A DNA stretch of 63,663 nucleotides, counting the filler, from Olpidium bornovanus S191 (lineage: Eukaryota > Fungi > Olpidiomycota), in assembly GCA_017911155.1 (NCBI GenBank). It is 28 parts of 28 records of this genome, joined end to end, with 100 filler letters (N's around TTAATTAATTAA, not from the genome) between each part and the next. Parts side by side here need not be neighbours in the genome. Positions count along the whole stretch, not along the records: positions 53,465 to 55,958 come from JAEFCI010009557.1; 27 more parts are not named here. The stretch is one strand, 5' to 3'. Within the stretch, counting starts at the first letter, position 1, and every line of letters starts with the position of its first letter. The translations under genes were made by a program, and so were the position numbers. The notes beneath the pieces were generated by a model. The model was not told the DNA's origin. It was given only the letters and a program-made list of their open reading frames with translations, and made no database searches. Shown one piece after another: positions 53,465 through 56,436 of this stretch.

Positions 53465-54871
53465 AGGCTGCCGGACGCGCAGGACGCCGCTCCTGCTGTA
53501 GCTCTCGCCCGTCGCGACGCACTTGGACAGGGCCTCGTCCCAGTCCGGCGGGAGGTCGACGGTGTCCCGGAAGTTGAGGTTCATGACGTCGCGCTCGAAG
53601 ATCTCCCTCCAGGAGGGGCTCGTCGACACGTATCGAGCGTTCGCGTCCAACGCGGCCACCGGGACCGGAGCCATTCTCATGAGCTTCAAGAACGCATCCA
53701 CGTCTTGCTGCGCGTGCTCCGTGGTCACATCCACGATGCTCTGCAACCGCTCCACCCTCGTGACGTCAACGGCGTTGATGAGGAATCCGGACACCTCGCC
53801 CGCCTCCACAGGGACCACCGTGAGCCCGGCCGGGCACACGCTGCCGTCCGAAGCCCGCAGGCGCCAAGACTTTTGTGGGTCCGTGGGCGAGCAGTTGCCT
53901 TCTCGCGAGAGCTTGGATAGGAACGCTTGGGCGTCGACAGGTTCCGACGGGCCTGCGCTCATGTGCTGCCGGACCTGAGCCTCGTCAAAGAGCTCGAGTA
54001 TCCTCCCGAAGTCGCCGCCGACTCTCGGCCGTCCGCCCCAGAACCTTTCCAACGCGCGTTTGTTTGCCACCTTGACTTCTCCTCGCGCTGTCGTTGCGAT
54101 GATGAAATGGGGCGTGTTGTCCAGCACAGCCGAGCGGAACGCCATGGCGGACTTGAGCTTCCTCTCCATCTCGATTTGGACAAGCACCGCCCGGAGGACG
54201 CCCGGGACGATATACCACACAGCCACCGAACAGACAAGGGACACTGTGGCGGTGAGGCCACGAAACGACACCACCGCCGGCAGGGACGAATTGCGGTGGG
54301 AGTCGATTATGTGCCCGATGCCGCACAACATGATGAAAGCCGCGAAGAGGATGGCGACGACCTTCTGGAGCGGCGTTGTCGACGGGAAGCTGCGGCCGTA
54401 ATAGACGATCTGAGCGGGGATGGCGAGGTAGCTGACGCCGACCAAAATATCGAATATGCGCAGCCAGTCGATCGCCGGCGCCAGAGAGCTGAGTTCCTCC
54501 GGGACGAGGTCAACCGGCAGGCCAGTCGCCGGGCACAGGTGCAGAAGGCAGGCAACAAGCAGCCGGCTCACTCGGGGCGCCTGGCCTCGCGTGGCAAATC
54601 CGCGGCGAAGTGGGCCCCACGTCGCATCCCGGGGCAGCGTCGACTTCCCAAGAAGGGGCATACCCCGCTGGCCTCCGAGACGACGTCCCTGCCCGCCTCG
54701 GTGGTGTCCGGTAGCGTGCCGCAAGGAGGTGAGCACCGGCGAGCACGAGGACAGTGTGTGGCGGCCGACACTCAGGGCGACAATGCCGCGCTTGCCAAGA
54801 TGACGCAGGACGCGACACCGAGCCAATATCTCGCACAGGGAATCGCGGACCGATCTGAGATACTCGGTCAT
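53465..54871 (-). CDS. Ethylene-receptor-like sensor: ETR1-type three-TM ligand-binding domain (about 54470-54190) followed by PAS/PAC and a second PAS; intronless, 3' truncated; start at 54871 or at the downstream Met (MPLLGK)
   Basis: DILVGVSYLAIP and FAAFIMLCGIGH preserve the spacing of ETR1 D25/Y32/I35/P36 and F58/F61/I62/C65/H69. RGLTATVS..IVP matches K91-T94-S98..P110. Downstream come AVLDNTPHFIIATTARGEV..AN and MAPVPVAALDANARYV..S. Confidence 0.88.
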
Positions 54872-55371
54872 TCGCGAGGGGGGTGGGTGGGGAATGCGTG
54901 CGAGTCAGCAGGGCCGCGGCCGCCCGCAATTTGCCTGCTGAAAGTCCAGCTTCACGCCGCACACGGGCGCTCCCTCACGACGGCTCGGCGTGATGCCGAC
55001 GCAACGCCCCTCCTTCCCGCCTGGCCGCCGCTCCCCGTCCGGCTTCTTCCCTCTGCTCCGCTGCGGGCGGGGGCAGCCGACAGCTTCCCGGAGGGGGGGG
55101 GGAGGTGGGGGGGAGGGGGGAAAAAGGGGGAAGGGGGCGACCGATTTCGCGGGGCGAAGCGGGAACGCGCTCTCGCCGACGGCGGGGCGGGCGCCGTCGT
55201 CGCCCTGCAGCCTTCCTCGCTCACCTTGCACGCTACGTGCCGGTAGCGAGGATCCCGGCCTGACGCCGTTCTTCCATCTCGGGTAAGGATCCCGGGCGGG
55301 GGGTCCCCGTTTCGGGGCGCGGCCGGCCGCCCCCCGCCCGCCCTCGCCCGTGACCCGGGCGCTCGTTCCCC

Positions 55372-55410
<39 letters not shown>

Positions 55411-55436
55411 CCCCCCCCCCCCCCTCCCCCCCCCCT

Positions 55437-55468
<32 letters not shown>

Positions 55469-56436
55469 CCCTGCGCGCGTCGCCGCGCGCAAACCCCGTC
55501 CCTCGGCCACCCCCGCACACGCCCCACCCCCCCGGCCCCCCCAGCGCACACGCCGGCGGCTCCCGCCCATCGGGAACGGGCGCAGAGAAGCCGCACGCGC
55601 GCGCGGCTGGAGCACGTCAGGCGGCGGAGCGGGGCGTCGGGCGTTTGATTGCGTGCTCGGCTGGCAAGAATGAAAAATCGGTCTTTCATCCCTCCTAGTG
55701 TCAGGCCCCCACCCCCCACCGCACCACCGGTGTCCCGTGCGCAGGAGTGTTGGGGGCGCTCCCATCCCCCCATTCAGTCAGTTCCCGTCAGGATAAAAAC
55801 GGCCGGTGCGCATCGAAGCGAAGAGTCCGCTGCGGCCCATGGTTGTACAAGCAAATACATCCCAGTCAGCTCTCGGACCTCCCCACCGTGACAGGCGCTC
55901 TCACGCCACGGCCTCTGGAAAGATTGGGGCCCCATTCCAGCCTACGAAAACAACAACANNNNNNNNNNNNNNNNNNNNNNNNNNNNNNNNNNNNNNNNNN
56001 NNTTAATTAATTAANNNNNNNNNNNNNNNNNNNNNNNNNNNNNNNNNNNNNNNNNNNNAGTTGGCTGATCTGCCACAGAGGGCGGCCCCAATCACCGGTT
56101 AGGCAACGGAGCAGGTTGAACCGGCAGCGCGGCGGCCGAAACCTGGCGTGACTTGAGGCGGAGCGGCCTCTGGCCCATGTCCGTATAAGCTTGGCCATCC
56201 CGTGAGACATACAGGCAAATCTCTTCGCGATCCGGGCTGGGAAGACTGCTTCCGGCGGTTCTCTTTCAAACGAGGCCACGGCGCCGCAGCCCCACAGCGC
56301 CTCGCGAAAGCCGACGCTGCAGCTGCTGGAGGCCCTTTACCACAAATACCGAAGGGGTCACGGCCGCGCCGTCAGAACCTTTCCCTGCCAGCCGTCAAAC
56401 TCTTCCTTGAAGGTTGGACAGCCGACGGTTCATAAA

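Follow-up and report, generated by a model that had tools for sequence, protein, structure and literature searches.

Our analysis suggests that the contig studied here most probably carries the 5' portion of a nuclear gene from Olpidium bornovanus, or from another zoosporic fungus in the sampled root culture, for a membrane-bound ethylene-receptor-like hybrid histidine kinase. The window (the whole stretch of DNA analysed) is 63,663 nucleotides long, filler included; within it, a 2,494-bp O. bornovanus contig encodes BJ554DRAFT_2174 as a minus-strand open reading frame, present at 53465-54871 (-) as the initial annotation had described. The deposit names the product simply a hypothetical protein, and its gene model is faulty. 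An Arg-rich stretch and then a hydrophobic helix open the protein, and three membrane helices with ETR1-type residues come next; a long helix leaves the third of these and leads to two PAS domains, which are linked by a second long helix. Olpidium lives as an obligate parasite of roots and transmits plant viruses. As it has a transcribed receptor whose predicted binding site is intact, it is well suited for testing whether early-diverging fungi sense plants. The features of the piece are as follows.

53465..54661, minus strand: coding sequence up to the piece edge, 399 codons; likely start ATG at 54661-54659
53465..53671, minus strand: PAS domain 2, N-terminal two thirds, cut by the edge (model elements 336-384)
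53672..53761, minus strand: long linker helix between the PAS domains (model helix 301-330, pLDDT about 90)
53762..54148, minus strand: PAS domain 1 (PAS_4, TIGR00229, model strands and helices 186-299)
54191..54460, minus strand: ethylene-binding-type domain, three membrane helices (Pfam ETR1_N; profile score, key residues)
54311..54325, minus strand: C-x3-H motif (CGIGH), equivalents of the ETR1 Cu(I) ligands Cys65 and His69
54512..54562, minus strand: extra N-terminal hydrophobic helix LLVACLLHLCPATGLPV (hydropathy, model helix 29-41)
54662..54854, minus strand: 5' untranslated part of exon 2, residues 6-70 of the initially annotated frame (stop and ATG positions, strain differences)
54855..55224, minus strand: 370-nt intron in the 5' leader, GTGAGC...TCTCAG (joint in X1 and X10 contigs)
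55225..55315, minus strand: exon 1 (5' leader), visible part (X1 record 1, X10 record 5)
55376..55468, no strand: upstream homopolymer tracts (T35, C25, T31; read contigs are cut at the tracts)

The start codon differs from the one first proposed. The initial annotation had begun the protein at an ATG at 54871, which falls within the 370-nt GT..AG intron; positions 54855-54871 are intronic, and this start and the first 70 residues of the frame had to be discarded. Sequencing-run contigs of X1 and X10 join 54854 directly to 55225, omitting 370 bases that read CT..AC at their ends on the plus strand; the unjoined form is kept in X2 contigs and in the assembly. The GT..AG ends on the strand of the gene argue for splicing, with the run types of X1, X2 and X10 being tool guesses ('RNA?', 'DNA?') and a strain indel conceivable as the source of the joint. 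The joined run contigs, read with these guessed run types, indicate that O. bornovanus transcribes the gene. The view that the gene has no introns thus holds for the exon, which runs uninterrupted for 1,390 nt (53465-54854), but not for the leader, whose intron is joined out in runs.

In the joined form, an in-frame stop precedes the junction by three codons and the frame first meets an ATG at 54661, which is likely the start codon and corresponds to M71 of the initially annotated frame (the numbering used for residues below, unless model positions are given). The stretch 54662-54854 is most likely 5' untranslated sequence: strain differences there comprise five non-synonymous and two synonymous changes, at a GC3 of 0.71. 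From residue 131 on, five changes are synonymous and three non-synonymous, at a GC3 of 0.83-0.84, and this synonymous bias and high GC3 support coding status downstream of 54661. At its 3' side the coding sequence is truncated by the piece edge inside the second PAS domain, and run contigs reach past 53465 by 314 nt (X1), 917 nt (X2) and 494 nt (X9). For the N-terminus we set aside the deposited model (P0001), whose poly-lysine is translated homopolymer tracts; we also rejected its first junction, which disagrees with the run-supported one, and its second intron (78 nt), which is retained in X1 and X2 contigs. An Rfam scan of the piece matched no family.

The initial annotation had recognised an ETR-type binding domain in a fungal gene, and the profile evidence bears this out for a contig deposited as O. 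bornovanus. Residues 138-227 match Pfam ETR1_N (PF25487) over positions 7-96 of the 97 in the profile, with a score of 51.8 bits (E 1e-13) against a gathering threshold of 27 bits. Three membrane helices are seen both as hydropathy peaks and as model helices 55-91, 97-121 and 127 onward (pLDDT 85-93). The 150 fetched proteins held no plant ETR, and AtETR1 as given in Text S1 of Herivaux 2017 served as reference. Against it, every residue named earlier is correctly placed: D141, Y148, I151 and P152 in helix 1 are equivalent to D25, Y32, I35 and P36; I180, C183 and H187 in helix 2 to I62, C65 and H69; and T207, S211 and P223 in helix 3 to T94, S98 and P110. The CGIGH motif (residues 183-187, helix 2) has its Cys65 codon at 54325-54323 and its His69 codon at 54313-54311. 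The ETR1 spacing is exact inside each helix, but the claim does not extend to the two inter-helix loops, which differ in length from those of ETR1 (by count, +2 residues between TM1 and TM2 and -5 between TM2 and TM3). Among 26 relatives the key ETR1 residues are invariant or almost so, with the equivalents of Y32, I35, C65, G66, H69, T94 and S98 invariant throughout.

As also proposed at the outset, an arginine (R204) occupies the position of K91, and it does so in all 15 clade members. In ETR1, K91 makes a polar bond with D25 and is implicated in receptor output, and C65 is a Cu(I) ligand (PMC11819568). Replacement of K91 by Arg is conservative, and the bond with the Asp could be kept. The clade-wide Arg and the unlike lengths of both loops are points against reading the domain as an ETR1-type receptor.

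Upstream of these helices, the extra hydrophobic segment that had been noted (LLVACLLHLCPATG) is indeed present, and hydropathy and the AlphaFold model agree on four hydrophobic helices. The model (overall pLDDT 82.6) contains four membrane helices and two PAS folds, and its fold matches are tandem-PAS sensors and plant subfamily-2 receptors; a search of solved structures by sequence matched none. In a comparison of structure models, the extra helix (29-41) lines up with the N-terminal one of ERS2, ETR2 and EIN4, and a homologous segment with an ALPV motif occurs in the metagenomic relative P0002 and in Spizellomyces punctatus SPPG_07928. This helix may serve as a signal peptide, or it may be a fourth membrane helix like that of the plant subfamily-2 receptors.

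Behind the membrane domain, two PAS domains occupy the position held by GAF in plant receptors, as the initial annotation had it: two PAS folds are found (the second below the sequence cutoff), and neither profile searches nor fold matches of the model gave a GAF domain between the binding domain and the edge. PAS 1 scores 24.5 bits with PAS_4 (cutoff 23.1) and 25.4 bits with TIGR00229 (cutoff 22.9), and has some 40 residues inserted where its N-terminal strands give way to the C-terminal (PAC-like) ones; its fold matches are FixL, DosP and single PAS domains, with target-normalised TM-scores of 0.72-0.75. PAS 2 stays under the cutoffs (PAS_8 17.6 bits, PAS 16.2 bits), its fold being backed by matches to tandem-PAS sensors. 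It aligns with the second PAS domains of the metagenomic proteins P0002 and P0169, in which HisKA comes next. A histidine kinase and receiver past the edge, as first suggested, is the best inference, with P0169 complete through HisKA-HATPase-REC and P0002 continuing into HisKA. Judging from these two relatives of the same layout, HisKA, HATPase_c and a receiver would follow about 50 residues beyond the piece edge. Searches for the 3' continuation gave only distant binding domains in a scan of JGI metagenomes; with the PAS2-HisKA part of P0002 as query, the best 120 of 7,871 matches contained no fragment from Olpidium.

If the protein works as its parts suggest, the Cys/His pair would hold Cu(I) as in ETR1, with the Asp positioning the His, and the copper ion in the membrane domain would bind ethylene. 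The resulting change would travel down the spine of helices and PAS domains to the kinase core and alter its autophosphorylation; the phosphoryl group would then pass to the fused receiver and on to a fungal His-phosphotransfer protein and response regulators. For a fungus that depends on roots as a parasite, such a signal would tell how near a root is or what state it is in. Sensing of root ethylene would be plausible in such a parasite.

Comparison with known receptors shows which parts of this scheme have counterparts. With Arabidopsis ETR1 the protein shares the ETR1_N domain and ten key residues at the same within-helix spacing, and with the subfamily-2 receptors ETR2, EIN4 and ERS2 the extra N-terminal helix. 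It differs from the plant receptors in its two PAS domains in place of GAF, in the Arg for K91 and in the +2/-5 loops. The Cys4/Cys6 pair at the N-terminus of ETR1, which forms dimer disulfides, has no counterpart in Olpidium. AzoEtr1 of Azospirillum brasilense and the cyanobacterial SynEtr1 share the order of binding domain, PAS and histidine kinase and the conserved Cys, Asp and His; unlike the Olpidium gene they are bacterial and intronless, and AzoEtr1 has a single PAS domain and retains a Lys (K98) where Olpidium has Arg. The first 130 residues of AzoEtr1 bind 14C-ethylene and the protein modulates root colonisation (PMC11819568), which may serve as a functional precedent for a root-associated microbe. 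The binding domains of Agaricus AbETR1/2 bind ethylene as well; for early-diverging fungal homologs, neither binding nor signalling was on record as of 2022.

In phylogenies, the binding domain branches with chytrid proteins. One tree places it in a 14-row clade with proteins of Fimicolochytrium, Gaertneriomyces and Rhizophlyctis (SH-aLRT 97), and in a second tree the corresponding 16-row clade has a support of 95/90, with the included bacterial rows falling outside (AzoEtr1 is absent from the tree, and the bacterial rows are other sequences). The phylogenetic check proposed earlier therefore gave a supported position among chytrid and giant-virus-context sequences, but not with the bacterial rows. 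Ethylene-receptor-like hybrid histidine kinases of early-diverging fungi have been described (Hérivaux 2017, mBio, PMC5285503) and correspond to group XVIII of Kabbara et al. 2019 (PMC6324907); the Olpidium gene adds a new lineage to this kind of fungal receptor. Olpidium, of the Olpidiomycota and sister to terrestrial fungi, is absent from both surveys, whose species are mostly saprobes, plus the mycorrhizal Rhizophagus. Our literature search found no paper linking Olpidium with ethylene receptors.

The likeness to the type of SPPG_07928 extends along the protein and includes a common motif signature: an N-terminal hydrophobic segment followed by ALPV, three helices with the ETR1 residues, an (L/F)PSTTxxQK loop, a CGIGHxxD motif, Arg at the position of K91, and PAS instead of GAF behind the membrane domain, in relatives with a hybrid-kinase output. 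The named chytrid proteins have a single PAS domain against two in Olpidium, and identity of the Olpidium protein to the chytrid subgroup is just 24-28%. The two chytrid genes that were checked have ordinary fungal neighbours. PAS in place of GAF is normal in the chytrid clade that holds this domain, so the PAS layout, previously called bacterial-style, is nothing peculiar to bacteria. The horizontal origin proposed at the outset, which had been argued from this layout and from a lack of introns, is not borne out on those grounds: the leader has an intron, the layout is that of the chytrid clade, and no bacterial protein is close.

P0002 and P0169 are the only relatives found that share the two-PAS layout. 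P0002 is 33-35% identical to the Olpidium protein over 356 residues and goes on into HisKA and the HATPase N-box; P0169 is 31% identical over the 347 residues to the piece edge. Both have the binding domain, PAS 1 and PAS 2 in the same order, and P0002 also the extra helix; they differ from the Olpidium gene in their GC content (42-46%) and, on locus L001, in tight packing against a neighbour gene. The frame of P0002 ends at an in-frame TGA and continues beyond it, and we rejected this end as an intron boundary on that account. A word-index search with the whole open reading frame returned nothing but its own protein, the relatives coming from an exhaustive search; the ESM Atlas gave generic bacterial PAS clusters only, and the BFVD matches were confined to generic PAS kinases from phages and giant viruses, the binding domain being unmatched.

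Several other readings of the contig have to be weighed against a fungal nuclear gene. Its GC content of 65%, the unbroken 1.4-kb frame and a binding domain followed by PAS, an arrangement often seen in bacteria, would suit a bacterial contaminant carrying a sensor kinase of that kind, yet such a contaminant is very unlikely, almost vanishingly so, because the leader intron, with its GT..AG ends, is spliced out in run contigs. Long T, C and G homopolymer tracts upstream and the position of the domain apart from the bacterial rows tell against it too, as does a search of 1.84 billion representative proteins, which held no close bacterial relative (the best bacterial-type matches cover the binding domain alone, with E-values of about 1e-9 at best). 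It is less easy to dismiss, though still improbable, that the contig comes from another eukaryote of the non-axenic cucumber-root culture, a chytrid or protist, and was misbinned: the contig is merely 2.5 kb, it belongs to a metagenome of zoospore washings binned by composition and similarity, so that its assignment to Olpidium is the depositors' binning, and its clade-mates are chytrids and unidentified metagenomic sequences. Against this, the depositors binned conservatively, the closest protein of a sequenced chytrid has about 35% identity at most, and the sequence recurs across several runs under one organism label and, as a 95-99% identical variant, in soil metagenome contigs, a recurrence that is not proof of source. 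Soil is a habitat that fits Olpidium. A fungal nuclear origin is thus favoured by the leader intron and the deposit, yet has to be held against the short binned contig and the viral-looking nearest relatives. As to function, the ETR1 fold may bind copper and respond to a signal other than ethylene, perhaps copper, the redox state, a different small unsaturated compound, or something sensed by the PAS domains. Two PAS domains lie between membrane domain and kinase, with the gas and redox sensors FixL and DosP among the best fold matches, Arg replaces K91 in a domain with altered loops, and all tested homologs come from outside the zoosporic fungi. We find this doubtful, however, given that the ten other named ETR1 residues are kept, seven equivalents being invariant in the 26 relatives, and that every tested homolog with these residues binds ethylene, be it from plants, cyanobacteria, Azospirillum or Agaricus; moreover, similarity to a heme-PAS fold does not demonstrate a heme site.

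Many clade members, including kin of the nearest relatives, sit on giant-virus-like contigs, so that viruses and zoosporic fungi may have exchanged such genes; P0002 and P0169 themselves are probably of giant-virus origin. The Olpidium gene could accordingly stem from exchange with a giant virus (Nucleocytoviricota), whether captured from it, left by an old integrated element or donated to the viruses by an Olpidium-like host, which we regard as unlikely on balance. In its favour, the two-PAS layout is confined, among the relatives found, to P0002 and P0169. The PAS2-HisKA part of P0002 is 58-64% identical to P0003 and P0168, which lie on compact, intron-free contigs with giant-virus markers: L010 has EsV-1-7 repeats (253.9 bits), KilA-N and DUF5767, and L012 the PBCV-1 minor capsid families P9_TM (59.9 bits) and P8_CR (32.5 bits) and GH46. 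The scaffold of a further member, P0163, is 322 kb long and has DUF5759, DUF5832 and DUF5767. The best tree groups Olpidium with this subgroup (support 78/82), and giant viruses that persistently infect and integrate into zoosporic fungi are documented in the literature. On the other hand, the Olpidium copy is just 31-35% identical to the subgroup proteins, has 65% GC against 41-53% at the virus-like loci and carries a spliced leader intron; alternative tree placements are retained (p-AU 0.40 and 0.38), cellular chytrid copies occur in the same clade, an IMG/VR scan returned no relative, and the viral nature of L001 and L017 is inferred. We therefore continue to prefer an ordinary nuclear gene of Olpidium or another zoosporic fungus; if there was a partner in horizontal transfer, it would be giant viruses rather than bacteria.

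Our literature search returned no paper on kin of this receptor on giant-virus-like contigs, and virus-borne kin would bear on how such sensors spread among eukaryotes. Apart from the Olpidium gene, no cellular member was found to share the two-PAS layout of the virus-context lineage. A more speculative view, to which we give rather little credence, is that ethylene-receptor-like hybrid kinases are cargo of giant viruses akin to those of zoosporic fungi and algae and that this gene is a product of exchange between viruses and the Olpidium lineage. If so, a plant-hormone-type sensor moved between a root parasite and its viruses, and some 'fungal ethylene receptors' might be viral in origin. Among the kin of P0002 and P0169, two proteins (P0003 and P0171) have lost PAS 1 and the equivalents of Cys65, Tyr32 and Pro36.

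Our analysis showed that the ethylene-receptor-type domain recognised in the initial annotation is real and transcribed (as judged from runs whose types are the tool's guesses), and that Olpidiomycota is a new lineage for an already described type of fungal receptor-like kinase, here in a two-PAS variant. Pfam ETR1_N (PF25487) matched residues 138-227, numbered from the ATG at 54871, with 51.8 bits and an E-value of 1e-13, against a cutoff of 27. When ETR1 numbering was anchored to AtETR1 as given in Text S1 of Herivaux et al. 2017 (PMC5285503), every residue initially listed could be matched: equivalents of D25, Y32, I35, P36, I62, C65, H69, T94, S98 and P110 are present, and K91 is replaced by Arg. 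Spacing within the helices is identical to that of ETR1, while loop 1 between helices is two residues longer and loop 2 five residues shorter. With 25 aligned relatives, the columns of Y32, I35, C65, G66, H69, T94 and S98 are invariant and those of D25 and P36 nearly so. The additional segment noticed before is borne out: hydropathy and an AlphaFold model both place an extra hydrophobic helix upstream of the three membrane helices, the model having a mean pLDDT of 82.6.

In the model, the third membrane helix extends as a long helix into the first PAS fold, followed by a second long helix and then the first two thirds of the second PAS fold. Of the tandem PAS domains proposed initially, the first is upheld by both profile (above the cutoffs of Pfam PAS_4 and TIGR00229) and fold, while the second is seen in the model fold but scores below cutoff by sequence. 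A Foldseek search with residues 162-384 matched the tandem-PAS sensors FixL PAS-A/B, DosP and Brucella LOV-PAS-HK, as well as single PAS domains at target-normalised TM-scores of 0.72-0.75. Among the AlphaFold Swiss-Prot models, alignment with the plant subfamily-2 receptors ERS2, ETR2, EIN4 and OsETR3/4 begins at model residue 31, so that the extra helix is part of the match.

The gene lies on a complete contig (53465-55958; 2,494 bp; GC about 65% throughout) of an assembly made from non-axenic zoospores washed off cucumber roots and binned as a metagenome according to tetranucleotide composition and resemblance to fungal proteins. A minus-strand ORF runs from 54871 to the low edge, its sole close database match being 'MAG: hypothetical protein BJ554DRAFT_2174, partial [Olpidium bornovanus]'. 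We checked the gene structure with contigs of four public sequencing runs aligned to this contig. One contig from run X1 (typed 'RNA?') spans 53465-54854 and resumes at 55225-55315, and a contig from run X10 has an identical joint. In principle this joint could be a strain indel rather than splicing, since run types are guessed and run X2 has the unjoined form with the 370 nt retained, but the 370 skipped bases are bounded by CT..AC on the plus strand and read GTGAGC...TCTCAG on the gene strand, as in a canonical intron. The gene is thus joined across an intron in both X1 and X10, and the absence of introns over more than 1.2 kb, initially taken to suggest horizontal acquisition, does not hold as an argument.

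With the intron removed, an in-frame stop lies three codons ahead of the junction, and the earliest in-frame ATG is at 54661-54659 (Met71 of the initial numbering). A variant from soil metagenome X9 (95-99% identical) shows five non-synonymous and two synonymous differences upstream of Met71, and three non-synonymous and five synonymous from residue 131 onward; GC3 is 0.71 upstream of Met71 versus 0.83-0.84 in the domains. These lines of evidence agree that the first 70 codons are noncoding, and therefore that the coding part in the contig is:

53465-54661, minus strand: coding part of the receptor-like kinase gene, 399 codons, uninterrupted

The start codon chosen initially, 54871, falls inside the intron, and Met71 at 54661 is the likely start. 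Run contigs reach past 53465 (X1 by 314 nt, X2 by 917, X9 by 494), so the gene extends beyond the edge. The deposited 578-residue model was rejected at its N-terminus, where T35/C25/T31 tracts are rendered as poly-lysine; its first junction differs from the run-supported joint, and its 78-nt 'intron' is present in the X1 and X2 contigs. The X2 contig lacks two bases at 53639 and has T>C at 53641, within the second PAS domain; the loss, if real, breaks the frame in that strain, or it may instead be an assembly or alignment artefact.

The T35, C25 and T31 tracts lie in the 5' flank at 55376-55468, with a G-rich tract at 55090-55120, and read contigs break here. Upstream, short separate X1 contigs cover 55615-55787 and 55921-55958; their ORFs had no Pfam match, and they may represent additional 5' exons of this gene or the margin of an adjacent transcript. 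The X9 contig matches 55799-55882 and is unlike the sequence past 55882, so the soil variant and the assembly diverge in their upstream flank.

Scanning 1.84 billion representative proteins gave only 333 matches at E <=0.001. One, P0002, covers the whole layout (residues 104-456, E 1.6e-53, identity 35% by phmmer and 33% by BLASTP); the rest match the binding domain alone or PAS alone, at E 7e-16 or weaker. Named matches come from zoosporic fungi and related organisms: Gaertneriomyces, Fimicolochytrium, Rhizophlyctis, Blastocladiella, Amoeboaphelidium and Allomyces, whose AMAG_09825 is a published receptor homolog. In a 104-row binding-domain tree Olpidium falls within a 14-row clade (SH-aLRT 97) in which every named member is a chytrid; support for the enlarged clade in a 40-row tree is 95/90. 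Its signature is an N-terminal hydrophobic segment then ALPV, an (L/F)PxxTxxQ loop, CG[IVL]GHxxD, and Arg at the K91 position (15/15 members), and the published Spizellomyces SPPG_07928 has the identical signature. Members are laid out as ETR1_N-PAS-HisKA-HATPase-REC. PAS in place of GAF, initially read as a bacterial-style layout pointing to horizontal acquisition, is therefore the norm of a clade including chytrids and no sign of recent bacterial origin. A bacterial contaminant, a concern raised initially, is very unlikely because the intron is spliced, and the domain sits inside a supported clade with chytrids. Such homologs, including extra-helix forms, were reported in many early-diverging fungi (Herivaux 2017, PMC5285503; Kabbara 2019, PMC6324907); Olpidium is absent from the species of both studies, and a literature search found no publication connecting it with ethylene receptors.

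Within the clade, the additional first PAS domain occurs only in Olpidium, P0002 and P0169. The 785-residue P0169 aligns to the Olpidium fragment through the latter's last residues (31% identity, E 5e-57) and continues into HisKA (382-458), HATPase_c (506-618) and a receiver (657-772), while P0002 runs into HisKA, an in-frame TGA and then a textbook HATPase N-box. Because these same-layout proteins run into kinase domains, we infer that the Olpidium gene encodes a predicted hybrid kinase, with HisKA starting about 50 codons past the edge. The TGA, at 2238-2240 of the P0002 contig L001, ends the ORF inside the N-box (DSRL*QILLNLMSNAIKFT) and the frame goes on; possible causes are sequencing error, a nonsense mutation of recent date, or recoding of the stop. 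Just upstream (L001 44-595) an ORF encodes the receiver end of a different hybrid kinase, which places kinase genes in tandem there.

Olpidium is an obligate root parasite, and ethylene sensing by its protein is a well-motivated hypothesis. Three membrane helices carry an intact ETR1-type site and lead into a continuous helix-PAS-helix-PAS spine. An Arg-rich stretch ahead of the first hydrophobic helix and an acidic loop behind it fit the positive-inside rule, and hence a topology like that of ETR1, in which the PAS and kinase regions are predicted to be cytosolic. By extension from work on ETR1 and AzoEtr1, the Cys/His pair would hold the Cu(I) that binds ethylene, the Asp would position the His and pair with the basic helix-3 residue (Arg in Olpidium), and the signal would pass along the helical spine to the kinase and a phosphorelay. 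AzoEtr1 of Azospirillum brasilense combines a binding domain, PAS and kinase in that order, and it both binds 14C-ethylene and modulates the colonisation of roots (PMC11819568). Ethylene binding has been shown for Agaricus homologs; in zoosporic fungi it was still to be assayed as of 2022.

Compact contigs that lack introns and bear giant-virus markers (L010, L012, L016, L014 and L002) encode several ETR1_N-type or related hybrid histidine kinases. L010, carrying P0003, encodes a seven-EsV-1-7-repeat protein (253.9 bits), KilA-N, Dam and DUF5767. The PBCV-1 minor capsid families P9_TM (59.9 bits) and P8_CR (32.5 bits) occur on L012, the contig of P0168, together with a GH46 chitosanase and, adjoining P0168, a second kinase. 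The 322-kb scaffold L016 of P0163 (chytrid-type subgroup) has DUF5759, DUF5832 and DUF5767, and P0015 (L014), from the same assembly as P0168, lies among ORFans. These contigs have a GC of 41-53% and resemble giant-virus genomes or integrated viral elements. By contrast, ordinary fungal genes flank the homologs in Rhizophlyctis and Fimicolochytrium, the second of which is spliced. Hybrid kinases are already known from phaeoviruses, and in 2026 giant viruses were described from zoosporic fungi; a literature search found no publication on an ethylene-binding domain in a viral kinase.

The PAS2-HisKA part of P0002 is 58-64% identical to a protein set including P0003 and P0168, and the best tree joins Olpidium with the virus-context subgroup (78/82); alternative placements are, however, not rejected (p-AU 0.40 and 0.38), and we regard gene exchange between a virus and the Olpidium lineage as possible but rather unlikely. 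The virus-context relatives P0003 and P0171 (alignment A2, columns 101-215) are without the first PAS domain and have Cys65 replaced by Ile, Tyr32 by Val and Pro36 by Ser; the fold is retained, though copper or ethylene binding probably is not. P0013, on L002, and the Rhizophlyctis rosea receptor homolog are sisters (100/100). On the same contig (3457-4644), a ribonucleotide reductase small-subunit gene lies in three same-strand pieces beside a NUMOD4/HNH_3 endonuclease gene, a split that could come from introns, or from inteins or homing elements.
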